From Ruditapes philippinarum (taxonomy: Eukaryota), in the NCBI RefSeq assembly GCF_026571515.1, contig NW_026860215.1, positions 1 to 64,000 of the forward strand: a DNA stretch of 64,000 nt. The letters run 5' to 3'. Below the pieces are notes generated by a model, which worked only from the letters and a program-made list of their open reading frames with translations, did no database searches and had not been told where the DNA came from. Below, one piece after another: positions 6,837 through 38,318 of the stretch (positions are counted from its first letter, which is position 1; every line of letters begins with the position of its first letter). A program made the translations under genes and the position numbers.

Positions 6837-6966
6837 NNNNNNNNNNNNNNNNNNNNNNNNNNNNNNNNNNNNNNNNNNNNNNNNNNNNNNNNNNNNNNNN
6901 NNNNNNNNNNNNNNNNNNNNNNNNNNNNNNNNNNNNNNNNNNNNNNNNNNNNNNNNNNNNNNNNNN
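6837..6966. other. Assembly gap (130 N)
   Basis: Run of N. Confidence 1.
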
Positions 6967-11836: not shown

Positions 11837-12009
11837 TTATCTTTTGAAGAAAGCAAAATATCCAAAAGCAGACATCAATGAGATTCCGGACACAGCAAGT
11901 GTTAGAATTTTCTTTCCAAATGTGAACTGACCAGCGTTGTTACTGAGATTCTTTGTAATGTCGTCATCCATTTGCCCTATGGAATCTTTCTCGGGAATGA
12001 TTTCATTTC
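11837..12009 (-). CDS. Terminal exon encoding a tail-anchor transmembrane helix
   Basis: atatatttcAG|GA AAT...; translation GNEIIPEKDSIGQMDDDITKNLSNNAGQFTFGKKILTLAVSGISLMSAFGYFAFFKR-stop. Confidence 0.8.
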
Positions 12010-14754
12010 CTGAAATATATGTGACATTGTTTACATATCAATATTGAATGTAATATAAATGATGTTCAGTATAATAAACAAAAAATGAATTCAATTAAAA
12101 GGTTTAGTAACATGCATTTTGCTTAAAAACGTACGTAGAGGAATTCAACAGAAAATCAATATCATATCAGGCATATGTTCTGTTTTCACAATTATTTATG
12201 GAATTTAGCTCCTTCCTCTAGGAAGCTTATTTTTAAAAAGTAACGAAATAAAGAATAGAAAACTTTGGCTTTATGACCAAGACATTAAAATAGTACCTGA
12301 AATATCATTGTTCTCTGTTGCGCATGGAGCGTTGCTGCTGTCCTTTGTAGCACATGCAACGTCGTCCTTGTCCTTTGTGGCACCTGCAACGTCGTCCTTG
12401 TCTTTTGTGGCACATTGTAGCTTGTTGTTTTCATTGCGTTTGAAATATGATCATTGATCTTTGCAACACTTGGGACAGTAGCACGTAGTGCGTTGTTATT
12501 TTCTGTTAATACTGGAGGGTTGTTGTCGTTGTCTTGGCCACTATGAACGGAATTTGTTATCTTAACAGCAAGGTTATCAGTGCTAATGTAATCTGAGGCT
12601 CCTGGGGATTTGTTGGCCTTCTCTGCAACACAAGGAGTGTGAGTGTTGCTTTTTGTTGCATGTGGTGGAATATCCGGGATGACATCTTCTCCAGTTTTGA
12701 TAATATCTGAAAATTTTAAAATATTTCATAGTTATCGATTTAAAAGTCAAACTCATAGAAATTACTTAGAAAATTAAAAATATCAACACATGCGATTTAA
12801 AAATTTAATTCGACATTATTTTAGTGCTTGATAGAGGAGATTGAAATTCCTTTAAGAAATTAACGCATTCTGTCGTCTCTATCATTTCTATACACTTCTC
12901 TTTCCAAATAAAAATTCTTTATATCTCTACACATGAATCTTGTTTGAGTGAACTAAATATACACCAAATAAATGACGGATGTAAACTGTCCAACAACTTG
13001 TCAAATAATTCAAAATCATATTTGTTTCGCTAATTCTTAGTGCATGTCTTTACAGTGCAAAGAACTTTATGTGGTTAGATCTTCACTCGGTGCTTTTGAA
13101 AAATCTAGATCGTCCTATATCAACTATACATATAATATAAAAAAATCAATATGAAATCCTTAATAACTCACTCTTCTTTGACTGGGATGCCTCTGTAGTT
13201 GTTAATATACGAAGAAGAAGAGAAAAAAAAACACAAAAAAAACCCACATACACACAACATACCGTCTACTTTGACTGTGGCAGGTACCATTCTTTTACAA
13301 TGTATCAGCCCAATGTTTCTCGGCGGCACGTATTTTGGAGGGTTTTTGATTTTTGGCACAACAAAGCCTACTTTATCTGCACGTGGAATATTGAGACTTG
13401 GCACGTGAAATGTTTCCTTCCTACCTAGAGATGGCGCTGGACGGTTGTGTTCAGGGTATACTAAAATAATTTAACATGAACATGTACTCATTAGCATAAA
13501 AGTTATTTGATAGTATGAAATTAAGATAAATTATGATAATGTCATAATAAAGATTATTTAGAAATTTTATGAACAAATGGTCAGAATGTTGTTGTTTTTC
13601 GCTTAAGTGAAATACATATATGGAATATATTTTTACCCAACAAGATATAATTCCATTCACATCCACGAGCCGGAACAGGAAGTGAAATACAACATATATA
13701 ATTTAGTTTCATCATGATAAGTGAAAATATATTCCATATTTCACGAAATACGAAAAAAATAACCTTTAAATTTAATTTTTCTTGCAAAGAAAAAAAAGAG
13801 TTATTTACAAAAAAAATCACATTTACTACACAGTTGAAATTGTATATATCCAAATATTTTCTTAAAATGAAATGAATTTTAGCTGAAGCTACTAACTCTC
13901 ACAGAAAAATATTAAACAGATCATCATCAGAATGGACACAACTTTTGATATCAAAGAAGGGTCAGAAATGTTTAATATAATACATGTATTTAAAATGATA
14001 AATAATTTTAAAAAGTATGTTTAATTCGTTAATTGAAAGAGAGGTAAAACTGTACCTTCTCTTCCAGCAAATGCTGTTTTGTTGTATGTATGTTCCACCA
14101 TTATTGGATGCTGACCAATATATATCGTATGAGGAGTTGTCGATTCAGTATCAACCACCTTTCCTGTACATGATCTTACTACTAAAAACTTGTAATTCAC
14201 GAAACTGTCTTTGGGAAGCCTTAAATATAAAACATGACAATTGTTTTGAAAGCTTAATTGACAGGTTATTATCTGGAGCTGATGCGTTGTTTAAGCAACC
14301 CAGGGAGCCACAGTTCTAAGACCTGATCGCTAGTTTTATTACAATGAGGTATAATTGAACAATCTTTCAATAACTTTGATATTTAGAAATTTTTAGAAAC
14401 CGTTTGGTATCTACACAAATTTCGAATGACTACCCTGATGTGTTGTACATGTAAAGGAAAAATGATATTATTTTGAATGAAACAAAGAGCTGTTCTGCGA
14501 TTTGTGACGGTTAGAAAATAAGTAATATTTTTGGCGTTCAGACATATTTGTTATAAAACCTACCACAAGTCTTTCTCCCAAACGTTACGCCCAATAGGTT
14601 TGCATCTTGGAGCAATTTCGGGGTTATCATTGCCAAGTTGAATGCCCGGACCGACCACGGCTACAAAGTAGTCATTTGCCCCACCCGGATAACATTCTAG
14701 AGACTTGAACACCCGCAGTTGTACTTTCACTTTATCATTTCTTGTTGATGTCAT
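11837..14754 (-). CDS. Six-exon gene: CBM20-like domain + putative LIR + repeat linker + C-terminal tail anchor (STBD1-like parts, ~393 aa if the 1-bp frameshift is repaired)
   Basis: Exons 14564-14754, 14056-14219, 13637-13681, 13263-13460, 12297-12706 and 11837-12009. Boundaries are GT-AG except one AC acceptor. Phases are compatible (2,1,1,1,1) apart from a 1-bp deficit in exon 5. The joined translation aligns by eye to the CBM20 consensus. A minus-strand AATAAA lies at 11804-11809. Confidence 0.75.
12297..12706 (-). CDS. Coding exon 5: low-complexity linker with 30-bp/10-aa repeats (ATKDKDDVAG/ATKDKDDVAC); contains a 1-bp frameshift
   Basis: aaattttcAG|...TCA G|GTac, 410 bp (411 needed). 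The repeat frame and the downstream phase both require a shift near 12430-12450. Confidence 0.7.
13263..13460 (-). CDS. Coding exon 4: Pro/basic-rich linker
   Basis: attattttAG|...GAC G|GTatgt, 198 bp, phase 1-1, open: YPEHNRPAPSLGRKETFHVPSLNIPRADKVGFVVPKIKNPPKYVPPRNIGLIHCKRMVPATVKVD. Confidence 0.75.
13637..13681 (-). CDS. Putative 45-bp phase 1-1 micro-exon (VPVPARGCEWNYILL) with a WxxI LIR-like motif; its acceptor reads AC
   Basis: gttgtatttcAC|ttcctg...ttgttgG|GTaaaa. The length is a multiple of 3 and the phase matches both neighbours, but the acceptor is non-canonical. Confidence 0.45.
14056..14219 (-). CDS. Coding exon 2: C-terminal half of the CBM20-like domain
   Basis: ttatatttaAG|G CTT...GAA G|GTac, 164 bp, open frame. 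LPKDSFVNYKFLVVRSCTGKVVDTESTTPHTIYIGQHPIMVEHTY contains the LP...YKF CBM20 motif. Confidence 0.8.
14564..14754 (-). CDS. Coding exon 1: N-terminal half of the CBM20-like domain
   Basis: ttattcacAG|ATG...TTG TG|GTaggt. Translation MTSTRNDKVKVQLRVF...FVAVVGPGIQLGNDNPEIAPRCKPIGRNVWEKDLW matches the CBM20 pattern VxFxV...VxVxG...LGxW...W. Confidence 0.8.
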
Positions 14755-16930: not shown

Positions 16931-19900
16931 AGCAACAACAACAACAACAACATTTTATTTTGTAAATAAAGGCCTCCGGCCCAAAATACACAATATAATC
17001 AAAACAGATATACATATTTAGCTGTGTCTACAATATACATTGTTATATATGACATGATTTCCTATTGATATTAATTATCAACAATTTTCATAATTTCATG
17101 AACAAAAAGCAATATTCTTATTTTTTTCTTCATTTTTGGTATTAATCAAATTACAAAAATTATGGAATGTATAATCATGACTGTACCATGGAGATATATA
17201 ACGTTGTCTTTATTGGGAAAATCTGTTACAAATAAAAAATACATGAAATTCATATTCGATGAACGAATTGTTATAATTTTGTAAACAGTGTTGGCAAATT
17301 CGCTCATATCTTGGTATACCCAAATGTCGTCCAGTTTCTATATATAATTTATGACTAGAACATCTAAATCTCGATAATGATCTTTTTATATAAAATGGCA
17401 TATCAATAGATAAATACTTTTCAGGATTTAACATAGATTTGAAAAATTTATAGGTGTCAATTCAGGGTGAATTCTGAATTTCTCCATCCAATTTTGTGTT
17501 TTACAATCAATAATCCTTTGTTTAAATTGATAAATAAAAAGATTGATATCCCCAATTTCTTGACTAAGCCATACAAAGCCAAACCCATAAGTATACACTA
17601 AGTTTTTTACTGAAGTAGCCCAATTTTTCTTTCCAACATTATCCTGTCTAGTTAACATCAAATAACAATTTCTAGGATATCTATGTTCTGGCATACAAAG
17701 AAGTTTACACCAATATTTGATAAATTTTACATGATGATCAATACATAAAGGCATCCTTCCACATTCACCCAGTGCAACATTGTCATTAACAGACTAATTT
17801 ACACCTAGAAAATCTTTACAATATTGTATTTGAACTAGTTCAAGAATTTCGGAGGATTTCGGCACCATAGGTAAGTATAGGTTTTAACATAGAGTCAAAT
17901 AATTTAAAATAATCAGAGTGTGAAAACTTGATATGATTTAATAGCTTAAATAGATTTCCTAGCTTGTGCAGCAAGTTTAGTTTTTGCTTTTGGCCAAGAT
18001 AATTTAGGTGTAAATAAAAGACCGATACATTTGTACATTGAGGTGACATTTACTGAACTGCTGTTGTATAACAATTTTTCATATGATCTGAGCGGTCCCC
18101 CATTTCTAAATACAATTATTTCAGTTTTATTCTCATTTATAGACATACCGGTATTATTACAAAATTCTGAAATTTAACTTAATTGAGACTGAAGTTCGAT
18201 CGCAGTATCGGCACAATTTGCAACATCATCAGCGAAAAGAATGCATATAATATCGGGAATTTGATCCGTAATGAATATACCGCGATGCCCCTTATTACGC
18301 AGAAAGGGAGAAAACTTATTTATATACAGATTAAACATAATCGTACTTATTACGTCCCCTTGTCTTGTACCTATGTTACATTTAAAATATTCTGTAGTTT
18401 TGGTAGTACTAACTTGTACACATCCACGCAGTTTGAGTACATTGATAAAATAACACGAAATAAATCCCCCCTAACGCCACATCTGTTTATAGTATTGAAT
18501 AAATTAAAATGTTTAAGTCCATCAAATGCTTTTTTTAAAATCTACATAAAGAACATAAAATCGTCCGCCCAGTTTACTAATATATTTCTGTACCAAACTT
18601 TGTAATATAAAAATATTATCAATTGTAGAGTAAGAATCCGGCTTGGGATTCATCTATTTTATCAAATTTCTCAGCCCAATTATATAACCTATCATATATA
18701 ATATTAGAAAATATCTTATACATAACATTGATTAAGGAAATTCCTCTATAATTAGAAGGGTCATCCTGAGGCCCAGACTTGTACACGGGTACTTTTATAC
18801 TATCATTCCAAATGTCTGGGATAACCCAGTACTAAATATCTTATTAAACAATTTACAAAGGACAGGTGCGATTAATGACGAAGTATTTTTTATAGAATTC
18901 TGCTCCGATGCCATCACTTCCCTGTGATTTTCCACATTTCAATTTATTTATACTTTTGATGACTTCATCAGAGGAAATTTCAGAATTTAAATAGAAATTT
19001 TCCTAATCAGTATTAACTCTAAAGTCCCAATTATTTTCATATATATTAGGTTGGTTACTTTTAAATAATAATTCATGAAAATAATCAAACCAAGCTCCGG
19101 TATCTATCAATGAAGATTGTTAATTTATATACTATTTCTAGATTTTAACAGTTTCCAAAAGGCTTTGGGATTTGATCGTCACGTAATTAGTTGATCGCGC
19201 TTAGACTTTTGGTAACGATACTTTTTTTATATTGCTCGTTTTTTTAAAACGTTTTCGGAGCGCTACAAATTGTTGAAAGTCTAATATATTATAAGACCAG
19301 CGAAAACGTCGTAGAGCTGCGTATTTAAGCAGCATAGTTGTTTCGCATTCTCGATCCCACCAGGGTTGATTATTATTTACACTATTTCGCGCTAAATATC
19401 TAACGCGCATATTTGCTGATGATTTTTTTTATAAATATTAATGATATGATTAACTGCATTGTTAATACTTAGATCTATTTCATGAAGAAAATTCTCTCGT
19501 ATAGAATTATACTCCGTGGTAAATAATTGTAAGAAATCCGACATATACCTATCATTCCATCTATATTTGTCGACATATACTTCATTAAAGGTTTCATTTT
19601 CCTTATTATATCTAACAAATGGTTGTCCTCGCTCTAAAGTCAATCTTGCACAAATTGGTAAATGATCTGATTCGTGACGCTCTTCAACGTTGAAATAACT
19701 TATATGAGAAAAGATATCAGACGAGACAATGTGATAGTCAACAACACTTGCTCCATTGTCAGTTAAACAAGTAAAATTACCTGCAACATCATTGTACAAA
19801 CGACCATTTAAAATATGGATACTATGAATACAACATAATTCTACAAGAGATCTCCCAAATAAATTATATCTCTCAATATCTTTGTTATTTCTAGAAATTT

Positions 19901-37123: not shown

Positions 37124-37284
37124 CTAAGATATGTTTACATCGTGAAATAGTTATAAAAAGGAAGCCTTCTCAAGTTTATAAAAAGTAAAACTAAAAATTA
37201 AGCTTTAGATTGAATATTGAATGAAATTAAAATATACATGTTTCTTTAAATCTAAATTCATTCCGTTTACCATGTTTCTTTCAG

Positions 37285-38318
37285 ATGTACCCACTCCTAT
37301 TATATCTGATTGGGGATTCTGGATAAAGTTTTTATCAACACCGCTAATTGTTCTCGTGGGAATCATTGGTAACAGCCTCTCTCTGATGGTAATGAAGGCG
37401 CCTTCATTGCGTAACAAGAGTTACTCGCATTTTCTCTGTGCGCTGGCAGTGTTTGACACATTTTCACTCCTCATCCGCCAGATCGAAAGTATCGACGAAT
37501 ATTATGTATTCCATTCTGCAAAACCTGGAGTATTTCAAAACTTTAACAGCTTAAGTTGTAAAATGTATAACTACATCGCTCATGTGATAACTTTAATGAG
37601 TTCTTGGTTGGTTGTACTAATGGCCGTAGAAAGACTCATAGCCGTTTGTTTTCCGTTTAAGAACGCAGTGTTGAGGAAACAGAATGGAGCTTTGATTGCA
37701 ATATGTGTGCTTTTATGCATTGTTCTTTTGAGTCAATCATTCCGTTTCATTATCATTGAGCACCTCCTGTACGATCAGAAATTCGAGATTTGGGATTGCC
37801 TTGCAGGGCATGACTTCATCGAACTATACACAAGCCTCGACATTTATTTCTTTCAGTGGGCATTGGTGTTTGTTTTTCCAGTAGTCTTGATTAGCGTTTG
37901 CAACAGTATGGTCATCTATCAAATTTTGAAAGTAAAGAAAGATGTGAATAGAGAGGAAGAATATCTAACACGTGCAGACAACAGTGGTGCTAGAAAGAAG
38001 ACGCGCAGTACCAGGATGCTGCTAATTTTGACATTCACCTATATGCTTACGCTGTTACCAGTGTTCTCTTTAACTTTAATTGTGGATTTATCAATAAAAT
38101 TCAGCAATATTTCAACAGCCCGCAATGTGTACCTTACACTCACGCCATATATAGACGTAGGCGTAGCTATTTCACTGATGAATTATGCTGTTAACTTCTT
38201 CATCTATGTTCTTTCAGGTAAACGGTTTCGATTTGAACTTAAGCGTCTCTTCAGACGCCGCCGTCGAAACAGGCCAAGTATTAAAAGGACGGCTACAGTT
38301 AAAAGTACACGCGTGTAA
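37285..38318 (+). CDS. Class A (rhodopsin-like) peptide GPCR, FMRFamide-receptor-like group, main exon (spliced product 374 aa)
   Basis: Seven hydrophobic segments with GIIGN (TM1), LAVFD (TM2), C...SSWLVVLMAVERLIAVCFPF (TM3), FVFP (TM5), LLP (TM6) and NYAVNFFIY...RFR (TM7/H8). Acceptor tgtttctttcAG at 37284. Confidence 0.93.

Follow-up and report, generated by a model that had tools for sequence, protein, structure and literature searches.

We find that LOC132759271, a minus-strand gene at positions 11837-14754 of a 64,000-nucleotide stretch of Ruditapes philippinarum DNA (the window), is probably one copy of a family of STBD1-like proteins that couple a CBM20 domain to a C-terminal tail anchor, with the anchor frameshifted in this copy, and that the intact family members are likely to be membrane-tethered adaptors. 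RefSeq names the gene's product "uncharacterized". Five minus-strand exons, with their three split codons included, give XP_060606994.1 (P0028; isoform X1, 331 amino acids) exactly, and all introns are GT-AG. The gene is therefore already annotated, and is not the "hidden gene" that the earlier note had taken it to be. We base its splice structure, laid out below, on the RefSeq models and on comparison with paralogs.

14564-14754, minus strand: coding exon 1, with its ATG at 14754; residues 1-63 of XP_060606994.1 and the first half of the CBM20-fold domain
14056-14219, minus strand: coding exon 2, matching XP_060606994.1; the second half of the CBM20-fold domain, gap-free in paralogs
13640-13684, minus strand: proposed 45-bp "LIR micro-exon", with an AC acceptor; rejected as intronic
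13263-13460, minus strand: coding exon 3, matching XP_060606994.1; the disordered region begins here
12297-12706, minus strand: coding exon 4, 410 nt, matching XP_060606994.1; low-complexity linker
12434-12435, minus strand: frameshift site, GCAATG in the window versus GCAAATG in seven paralogs, with one A missing
11837-12009, minus strand: last exon (exon 5), matching XP_060606994.1
11977-12009, minus strand: annotated end of the coding sequence in the shifted frame, ten codons and then TAG at 11977-11979, in the P0028 and P0026 models
11837-12007, minus strand: last exon in the paralog frame, encoding an acidic stretch, GKK, a hydrophobic helix (~11846-11908), KR and a stop at 11837-11839; out of frame as assembled

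The earlier note had joined six exons into one protein. Five of these are the annotated ones, and the sixth, the 45-bp segment, is missing from the RefSeq models P0025, P0026 and P0028. Three paralogous copies show gaps of 1, 14 and 23 nt within this segment and a fourth aligns poorly (51% identity), unlike exons 1, 2, 3 and 5, which are gap-free across paralogs. Nor do the exon phases match throughout, as had been claimed: exon 4 leaves phase 0, while the helix-encoding frame of the last exon needs phase 1. The proposed length of ~393 residues, from (191 + 164 + 45 + 198 + 411 + 173)/3 - 1 = 393, assumes one base more in exon 4 than is present.

The N-terminal domain of the family has a CBM20 fold, confirmed by structure prediction, whose closest solved structure is that of STBD1. 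We used the AlphaFold model of the paralog P0025, which is 90% identical to the window's protein, shares its exon 1 sequence exactly and is 96% identical to it in exon 2. The model has pLDDT values of 75-89 over residues 4-120, and a Foldseek search with it returned the crystal structure of the human STBD1 CBM20 domain (8x8k) as best match (TM 0.88, rmsd 2.2, E 2.7e-8), with the remaining top matches likewise all CBM20. In a profile comparison with PDB sequences, 8x8k again ranked first (E 0.019), and hhalign matched the family to a canonical clam CBM20 protein, P0030, with E 2.8e-5. Pfam CBM_20 scores for five full-length homologs were 17.6, 18.1, 20.2, 23.4 and 25.8 bits, around the PF00686 gathering threshold of 23.3 bits; P0027 carries a precomputed PF00686 match, and the atlas feature score against CBM_20 clusters was 0.97. 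The window's six proposed exon peptides, searched singly against Pfam, gave no CBM20 match, and phmmer with P0005 found no match among PDB sequences. Together, the model, profile, Pfam and atlas results bear out the CBM20-pattern N-terminus read earlier from the letters. One Pfam CBM_20 match in the same genome, at locus L031 on C14449, falls in a satellite repeat and counts as a false positive.

Within this fold, the sugar-binding platform has been altered. In STBD1, W293 and W334 stack on glucose in site 1 (PMC11406230). In our alignments and hhalign comparisons, the first of these positions has changed from the canonical LGxW to LGND across the family (encoded by exon 1 in the window), and the second from xWEE to DTES or DIES, with threonine in place of tryptophan in the window's exon 2; the profile comparison with PDB sequences shows the first change too. 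Of the sugar-stacking Trp pair and lysine that make up site 1, the family thus retains the YKF lysine, which is also present in the window's exon 2, and has lost the pair. As we read the alignments, the equivalents of STBD1 site 2 are altered as well, from Arg to Asp and from Trp to Tyr. With neither site-1 tryptophan kept, the family cannot be taken to bind glycogen, and the loss of the pair, with the site-2 changes alongside, argues against ordinary glycogen binding as far as sequence can tell.

A search of the same genome with exon 1 gave 14 matches, and LOC132759271 belongs to a multigene family, some of whose copies are arranged in tandem, with members in Ruditapes and Mercenaria (both Veneridae). 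A profile search for further homologous proteins returned the input proteins only, so the family is not extended beyond these two genera. Estimates of dN/dS were 0.1-0.3 for exon 1, 0.1-0.6 for exons 1-3 and ~0.5 for the last exon; by this comparison of coding sequences, exons 1-3 and the last exon are under purifying selection. A canonical sugar platform that is lost, in a CBM20 fold that is nevertheless under purifying selection, suggests a changed ligand.

Eight homologs, P0001, P0003, P0004 and P0005 (Mercenaria) and P0007, P0011, P0025 and P0027 (Ruditapes), have the same order of parts, and in nine homologs the best 19-residue segment scores 1.6-2.2 on the Kyte-Doolittle scale, lies 1-8 residues before the C-terminus and has basic flanks. 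The P0025 model places a terminal helix at residues 364-387. We found no signal peptide or second transmembrane segment in the family; the N-terminus is polar, and the one hydrophobic segment among residues 1-40 forms a beta-sandwich strand. Intact family members are thus predicted, from sequence and model, to have tail-anchor topology, with a single C-terminal transmembrane helix and a short tail, in which case the CBM20 domain must face the cytosol. The hydrophobicity and basic flanks of this helix would fit targeting to the mitochondrial outer membrane only loosely. Our literature search found no account of the C-terminal anchor, of the LOC identifiers or of tail-anchored glycogen proteins with a carbohydrate-binding module.

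The copy in the window departs from this plan at a single base. Its exon 4 is 410 nt long, versus 441, 471, 393, 471 and 399 nt in five paralogs, all multiples of three. The missing A shifts the frame, and the assembled gene ends in ...FPRKIP-stop, without the helix. Accordingly, the annotated product reaches a Kyte-Doolittle maximum of 0.57 and lacks a C-terminal helix, and the assembled gene encodes a CBM20 domain and linker with no anchor. The terminal open reading frame with a hydrophobic stretch and KR-stop described in the earlier note is present in the DNA, in the same frame as in the paralogs; the tail anchor proposed from it holds for the Ruditapes and Mercenaria homologs and fails for the window copy as assembled, where the helix is out of frame. 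A "rescue" intron within exon 4 can be dismissed, since in paralogs translation continues across this part of the exon, and no such intron appears in either RefSeq isoform. A DNA search of the same genome found no allelic copy of exons 4-5, the next-best copy being 87% identical.

The AAA to AA difference could be a real mutation or an assembly error, and the window copy may accordingly be a variant that was recently disabled or is soluble, or an intact gene that has been mis-assembled and would encode a tail-anchored protein of roughly 378 residues. We hold it possible, while leaning against it, that the copy has no function of its own, either as a pseudogene or as a decaying part of a birth-and-death array. 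The one-base deletion is peculiar to this copy, and nearby paralogs look damaged as well: stops interrupt the frame of L019, which also has an insertion, the donor site of L020 is gone, and rearrangement or truncation affects L024 and L021. Against decay, exons 1-3 are intact and encode protein nearly identical to that of P0025, and the helix-coding frame of the last exon is still open, with dN/dS values of 0.37-0.65 against paralogs that do not exceed those between other copies. RefSeq also models two isoforms of the gene, and an assembly error would remove the deletion itself.

If the preferred reading of a tail-anchored, STBD1-like family is right, intact members would act as membrane-tethered adaptors of STBD1 type that tether a cytosolic ligand to the surface of an organelle. 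That ligand may be glycogen, held only weakly or at a non-canonical site, or it may be a protein partner, which could be recruited through a motif in exon 3.

The earlier note had gone further and proposed an organelle-anchored glycophagy receptor, in which the CBM20 domain binds glycogen, an LIR binds Atg8 proteins and the tail anchor sits in the mitochondrial outer membrane. The STBD1-like fold, the C-terminal anchor of intact members and its moderate hydrophobicity between basic flanks are all in keeping with such a receptor, and a molluscan STBD1 with an N-terminal CBM20 domain drives glycophagy in the oyster (PMC12913940). However, the exon said to carry the Atg8-interacting LIR is intronic, and our motif scan found no [WFY]xx[LIV] core in the linkers of P0025 and P0028 and none conserved across the family. 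With the glucose-stacking tryptophans also replaced and the anchor lost from the window copy, we consider a receptor of this kind unlikely.

The linker itself is long, disordered and repeat-bearing across the family, as the P0025 model and the paralogs support and as had been suggested for the window copy. Exon 4 carries ~30-nt repeats at ~12322-12411, corresponding to ATKDKDDVA units in the paralog frame, and the number of repeats differs among family members. In the P0025 model the exon 3 part has pLDDT values of 31-37, and paralogs show 90-95% amino-acid identity to exon 3 and no gaps. The exon carries a conserved motif, FHVPSLNIPRADKVGF (~13354-13410, minus strand), whose RVxF-like K-V-G-F lies in the best-conserved stretch of this otherwise disordered region. 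An RVxF-type [KR]-[VI]-x-F occurs at a common alignment position in five of the nine members scanned (P0025, P0028, P0001, P0003 and P0004) and is missing from P0005, P0007, P0011 and P0027.

This motif raises the possibility that the clam proteins are membrane-anchored scaffolds that recruit PP1, by analogy with vertebrate PPP1R3A/GM, the muscle subunit that targets PP1 to glycogen, and with CBM20 in place of CBM21. In GM, a glycogen-binding domain occurs together with an RVxF motif and a domain that binds the sarcoplasmic reticulum (PMC3240831). The clam proteins resemble it in layout: the carbohydrate-binding module lies towards the N-terminus, the chain also holds an RVxF-type motif and a long region that is not globular, and the C-terminus is the membrane-binding part. 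The two share no sequence homology, though, and the RVxF motif of GM precedes its CBM21 domain, whereas the clam motif follows a CBM20 domain and is not family-wide. PPP1R3 proteins are defined by RVxF together with CBM21, and the homologs we searched gave no CBM_21 match in Pfam, which leaves the clam family outside that group. Since RVxF is also short and frequent by chance, we regard the PP1 scaffold as very unlikely.

Tail-anchored, STBD1-like adaptors, the reading we prefer, can be set beside the STBD1 proteins already described. The suggestion that N-terminal CBM20 proteins of STBD1 type might be known in molluscs proved correct: STBD1-alpha, the N-terminal-CBM20 STBD1 of lophotrochozoans, was published in 2026 (Ren et al., Commun Biol 2026, PMC12913940). 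Like the clam proteins, STBD1-alpha has one N-terminal CBM20 domain followed by a non-globular C-terminal part and has expanded in bivalves. The clam CBM20 domain is nearest to that of STBD1 by structure and by profile. The clam proteins differ in ending in a transmembrane helix and in the replacement of both site-1 tryptophans; oyster STBD1 is reported to have no hydrophobic anchor and to bind glycogen "in a free state" (PMC12913940). Most clam members fall below the Pfam trusted cut-off used in that study, so its screen probably missed them.

Vertebrate STBD1 (genethonin-1) shares with the clam family a cytosol-facing CBM20 domain, a membrane anchor and a disordered middle, together with the site-1 lysine and the glutamate adjoining the second Trp position. 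It differs in having the reverse order, in which the anchor (ER/MAM, N-myristoylated; PMC5358331) is N-terminal and the CBM20 domain C-terminal, and in possessing a functional LIR and W293/W334 (PMC11406230), neither of which occurs in the clam family. Of the reversed STBD1-like architecture that the earlier note described, the N-terminal CBM20 domain and C-terminal anchor thus stand for the family, and the LIR and the window copy's own anchor do not.

A second R. philippinarum protein bears on this comparison. P0030 (XP_060594480.1, LOC132748844) has two CBM20 domains (94 bits in Pfam), a long low-complexity linker and a hydrophobic C-terminal helix, with a few residues between the helix and the stop. 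It resembles the window's family in its N-terminal CBM20, linker and terminal helix, and differs in that its two domains keep both tryptophans and its gene has a single exon, whereas the family has one degenerate CBM20 domain and five exons. A bolder proposal, which we offer tentatively and regard as rather doubtful, is that clam STBD1-type proteins, both P0030 and the Trp-less family, are genuinely tail-anchored, and that the Trp-less family has taken on a new role as an adaptor at the organelle surface, where the conserved exon-3 motif recruits a partner that may be PP1.

For LOC132759271 itself the implication is narrower: the gene is already annotated, and the assembly has its anchor out of frame. 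For the family, the 2026 account holds that molluscan STBD1 acts freely in the cytosol, without a membrane anchor, and that vertebrates gained theirs later (PMC12913940), and a conserved C-terminal anchor on clam CBM20 proteins would qualify this picture. If clam STBD1-type proteins are indeed tail-anchored, membrane anchoring of CBM20 glycogen adaptors would not be a vertebrate invention, and the bivalve anchor, which sits at the other terminus, would have arisen independently or already been present. With the clam proteins as a natural "mirror-image" design, one could then ask whether anchoring affects where glycogen is handled.

The minus-strand gene at 11837-14754 lies in a window of AT-rich animal DNA (~30% GC). 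Homologs were retrieved by phmmer with exon 1, then by word-index searches and cluster look-ups, which returned RefSeq proteins from the Manila clam Ruditapes philippinarum (Veneridae) and from Mercenaria mercenaria. One of these, P0028 (XP_060606994.1, "uncharacterized protein LOC132759271 isoform X1", 331 aa), is reproduced exactly by five window exons in an exon-by-exon check that included the three split codons, and all introns between these coding exons are GT-AG. What an earlier note had described as a hidden gene is thus already in RefSeq as the Manila clam gene LOC132759271.

Coding exons of the window gene (LOC132759271)
14754-14564, minus strand: exon 1, 191 nt, coding
14219-14056, minus strand: exon 2, 164 nt, coding
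13460-13263, minus strand: exon 3, 198 nt, coding
12706-12297, minus strand: exon 4, 410 nt, coding
12009-11837, minus strand: exon 5, 173 nt, coding

The earlier note had counted a sixth exon, a 45-bp "LIR micro-exon" at 13640-13684. We reject this exon: its acceptor is AC, it is missing from every RefSeq model, and its alignment shows 1-, 14- and 23-nt gaps in three paralogs and is poor in a fourth, while exons 1, 2, 3 and 5 show zero gaps in paralog alignments. A [WFY]xx[LIV] core is missing from the real linkers of P0028 and of P0025, a Ruditapes paralog, and no instance is conserved across the family members compared, leaving the proposed LIR unsupported. Elsewhere in the window are an ORF of 365 aa that has no introns and encodes a 7TM receptor domain of the rhodopsin family (37221-38318, plus strand; 7tm_1, 63 bits), retroelement ORF fragments (17428-19799, minus strand) with a weak, below-threshold endonuclease-reverse transcriptase match (Exo_endo_phos_2), and a 130-N run at 6837-6966, an assembly gap or mask.

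Single window exons gave no Pfam match, and full-length homologs score 17.6-25.8 bits for CBM_20, on either side of the 23.3-bit threshold. A search of PDB sequences with a nine-member family profile ranked the STBD1 CBM20 chain 8x8k first (E 0.019). In the AlphaFold model of P0025, a beta-sandwich of eight strands is predicted with confidence over residues 4-120 (pLDDT 75-89); the window protein is identical to P0025 over exon 1 and 96% identical over exon 2. Foldseek with this model again placed 8x8k on top (E 2.7e-8, TM 0.88, rmsd 2.2 Å), followed by CBM20 domains only. An Atlas feature search gave 0.97 to CBM_20 clusters, and hhalign against a canonical clam CBM20 gave E 2.8e-5. Since these several independent lines agree, we conclude that the N-terminal domain has a CBM20 fold, in line with the CBM20-like domain of the earlier note. 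Separately, CBM_20 matches of 22-27 bits at C14449:36116-39482 (loci L031/L032) are spurious; they fall on a satellite with the translation …LSWEQRTTY…GTKNN….

In human STBD1, the site-1 tryptophans W293 and W334 stack on glucose units (PMC11406230). An alignment that included canonical CBM20 domains from this genome shows that the clam family has replaced both: Asp stands at the first position, or Tyr in one paralog, and Thr or Ile at the second; the site-1 lysine and the following glutamate are retained.

Nine full-length homologs from the two clam genera share one order of parts: the CBM20 domain, then a conserved stretch that exon 3 encodes, a variable low-complexity linker, and a single hydrophobic C-terminal helix (1.6-2.2 on the Kyte-Doolittle scale, with basic flanks) followed by 1-8 residues. 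In the P0025 model, residues 121-362 are disordered and residues 364-387 form the helix. Family proteins contain no signal peptide, and intact members are predicted to be tail-anchored with the CBM20 domain towards the cytosol.

The exon-3 stretch carries a conserved linear motif within a disordered region, FHVPSLNI-x-R-x-D-[KR]-[VI]-x-F (13354-13410, minus strand), found at the same alignment position in the Mercenaria proteins P0001, P0003 and P0004. The motif includes an RVxF-like K/R-V/I-x-F, which five of the nine family members, spanning both genera, share at a single position of the alignment; it is a candidate PP1-docking pattern, which we offer as a lead only.

The tail anchor proposed for this gene holds for the family; the window copy as assembled does not encode it in frame. 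Exon 4 exits in phase 0, the helix-coding frame of the last exon requires phase 1, and the junction does not have the matching phases previously claimed. Read in the annotated frame, exon 5 yields ten residues before a TAG at 11977-11979. At 12434-12435 the window reads GCAATG where all seven paralogs in the exon 4 alignment read GCAAATG, and exon 4 in five paralogs measures 441, 471, 393, 471 and 399 nt, all multiples of three, versus 410 nt in the window. The 393 aa of the earlier note are expected with a 411-nt exon 4, so that one base was most likely miscounted. A DNA search of the same genome found no second haplotype copy of the exon 4-5 region in the assembly. As assembled, the tail anchor of the window copy is out of frame, through either a true mutation or an assembly error.

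At least 14 matches to exon 1 and at least 13 to the last exon occur in the same genome, including five full pairs 2.7-4.2 kb apart in arrays on C15792 and C7211, and several copies are damaged. dN/dS is 0.1-0.6 for exons 1-3 and about 0.5 for the last exon, and the window copy resembles the others. Within the tandem arrays (C15792:29500-93000 and C7211:30000-65500), where several copies are broken, similarity is mosaic; for example, the copy at C15792:89130 is 100% identical to the window in exon 1 protein and only 77% in the last exon. Such a pattern suggests that copies have undergone gene conversion or swapped exons. A coding repeat of ~30 nt (window 12322-12411, minus strand; paralogs L017, L018, L019 and L025), encoding ATKDKDDVA units in the paralog frame, is present in 1 to 4 copies among paralogs. 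RefSeq isoforms X1 and X2 of the window gene differ by exactly one 30-nt unit, which resembles a polymorphism in repeat number more than a difference in splicing.

A canonical relative, P0030 (LOC132748844; C5612, locus L045:1760-3904, minus strand), is a single-exon gene of 715 aa with two canonical CBM20 domains (94 bits, tryptophans intact); its hydrophobic C-terminal helix lies six residues short of the stop. The protein shares the N-terminal-CBM20/terminal-helix design with the window family and, judged by sequence, is a predicted tail-anchored protein of "STBD1-gamma" type; the accessible literature contains no mention of it.

According to Ren et al. 2026 (PMC12913940), STBD1 with an N-terminal CBM20 ("STBD1-alpha") is the form found in lophotrochozoans and has expanded in bivalves. 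The reversed CBM20 position is therefore already known. The same paper reports that oyster STBD1 lacks the hydrophobic anchor, makes no mention of a C-terminal helix in its main text, and describes a screen at the Pfam trusted cut-off, which most window-family members would fail. Vertebrate STBD1 has its anchor at the N-terminus (PMC5358331), whereas the clam family has its helix at the C-terminus; by part order the closest analogue is PPP1R3A/GM, which combines a carbohydrate module and an RVxF motif with a C-terminus that binds membranes (PMC3240831). The observation of the earlier note is confirmed in part, and its interpretation finds partial support at the family level; in the window copy as assembled, the anchor is out of frame. 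For the family, we infer that the proteins act as STBD1-type adaptors tethered to a membrane, and they may have lost glycogen as their ligand.
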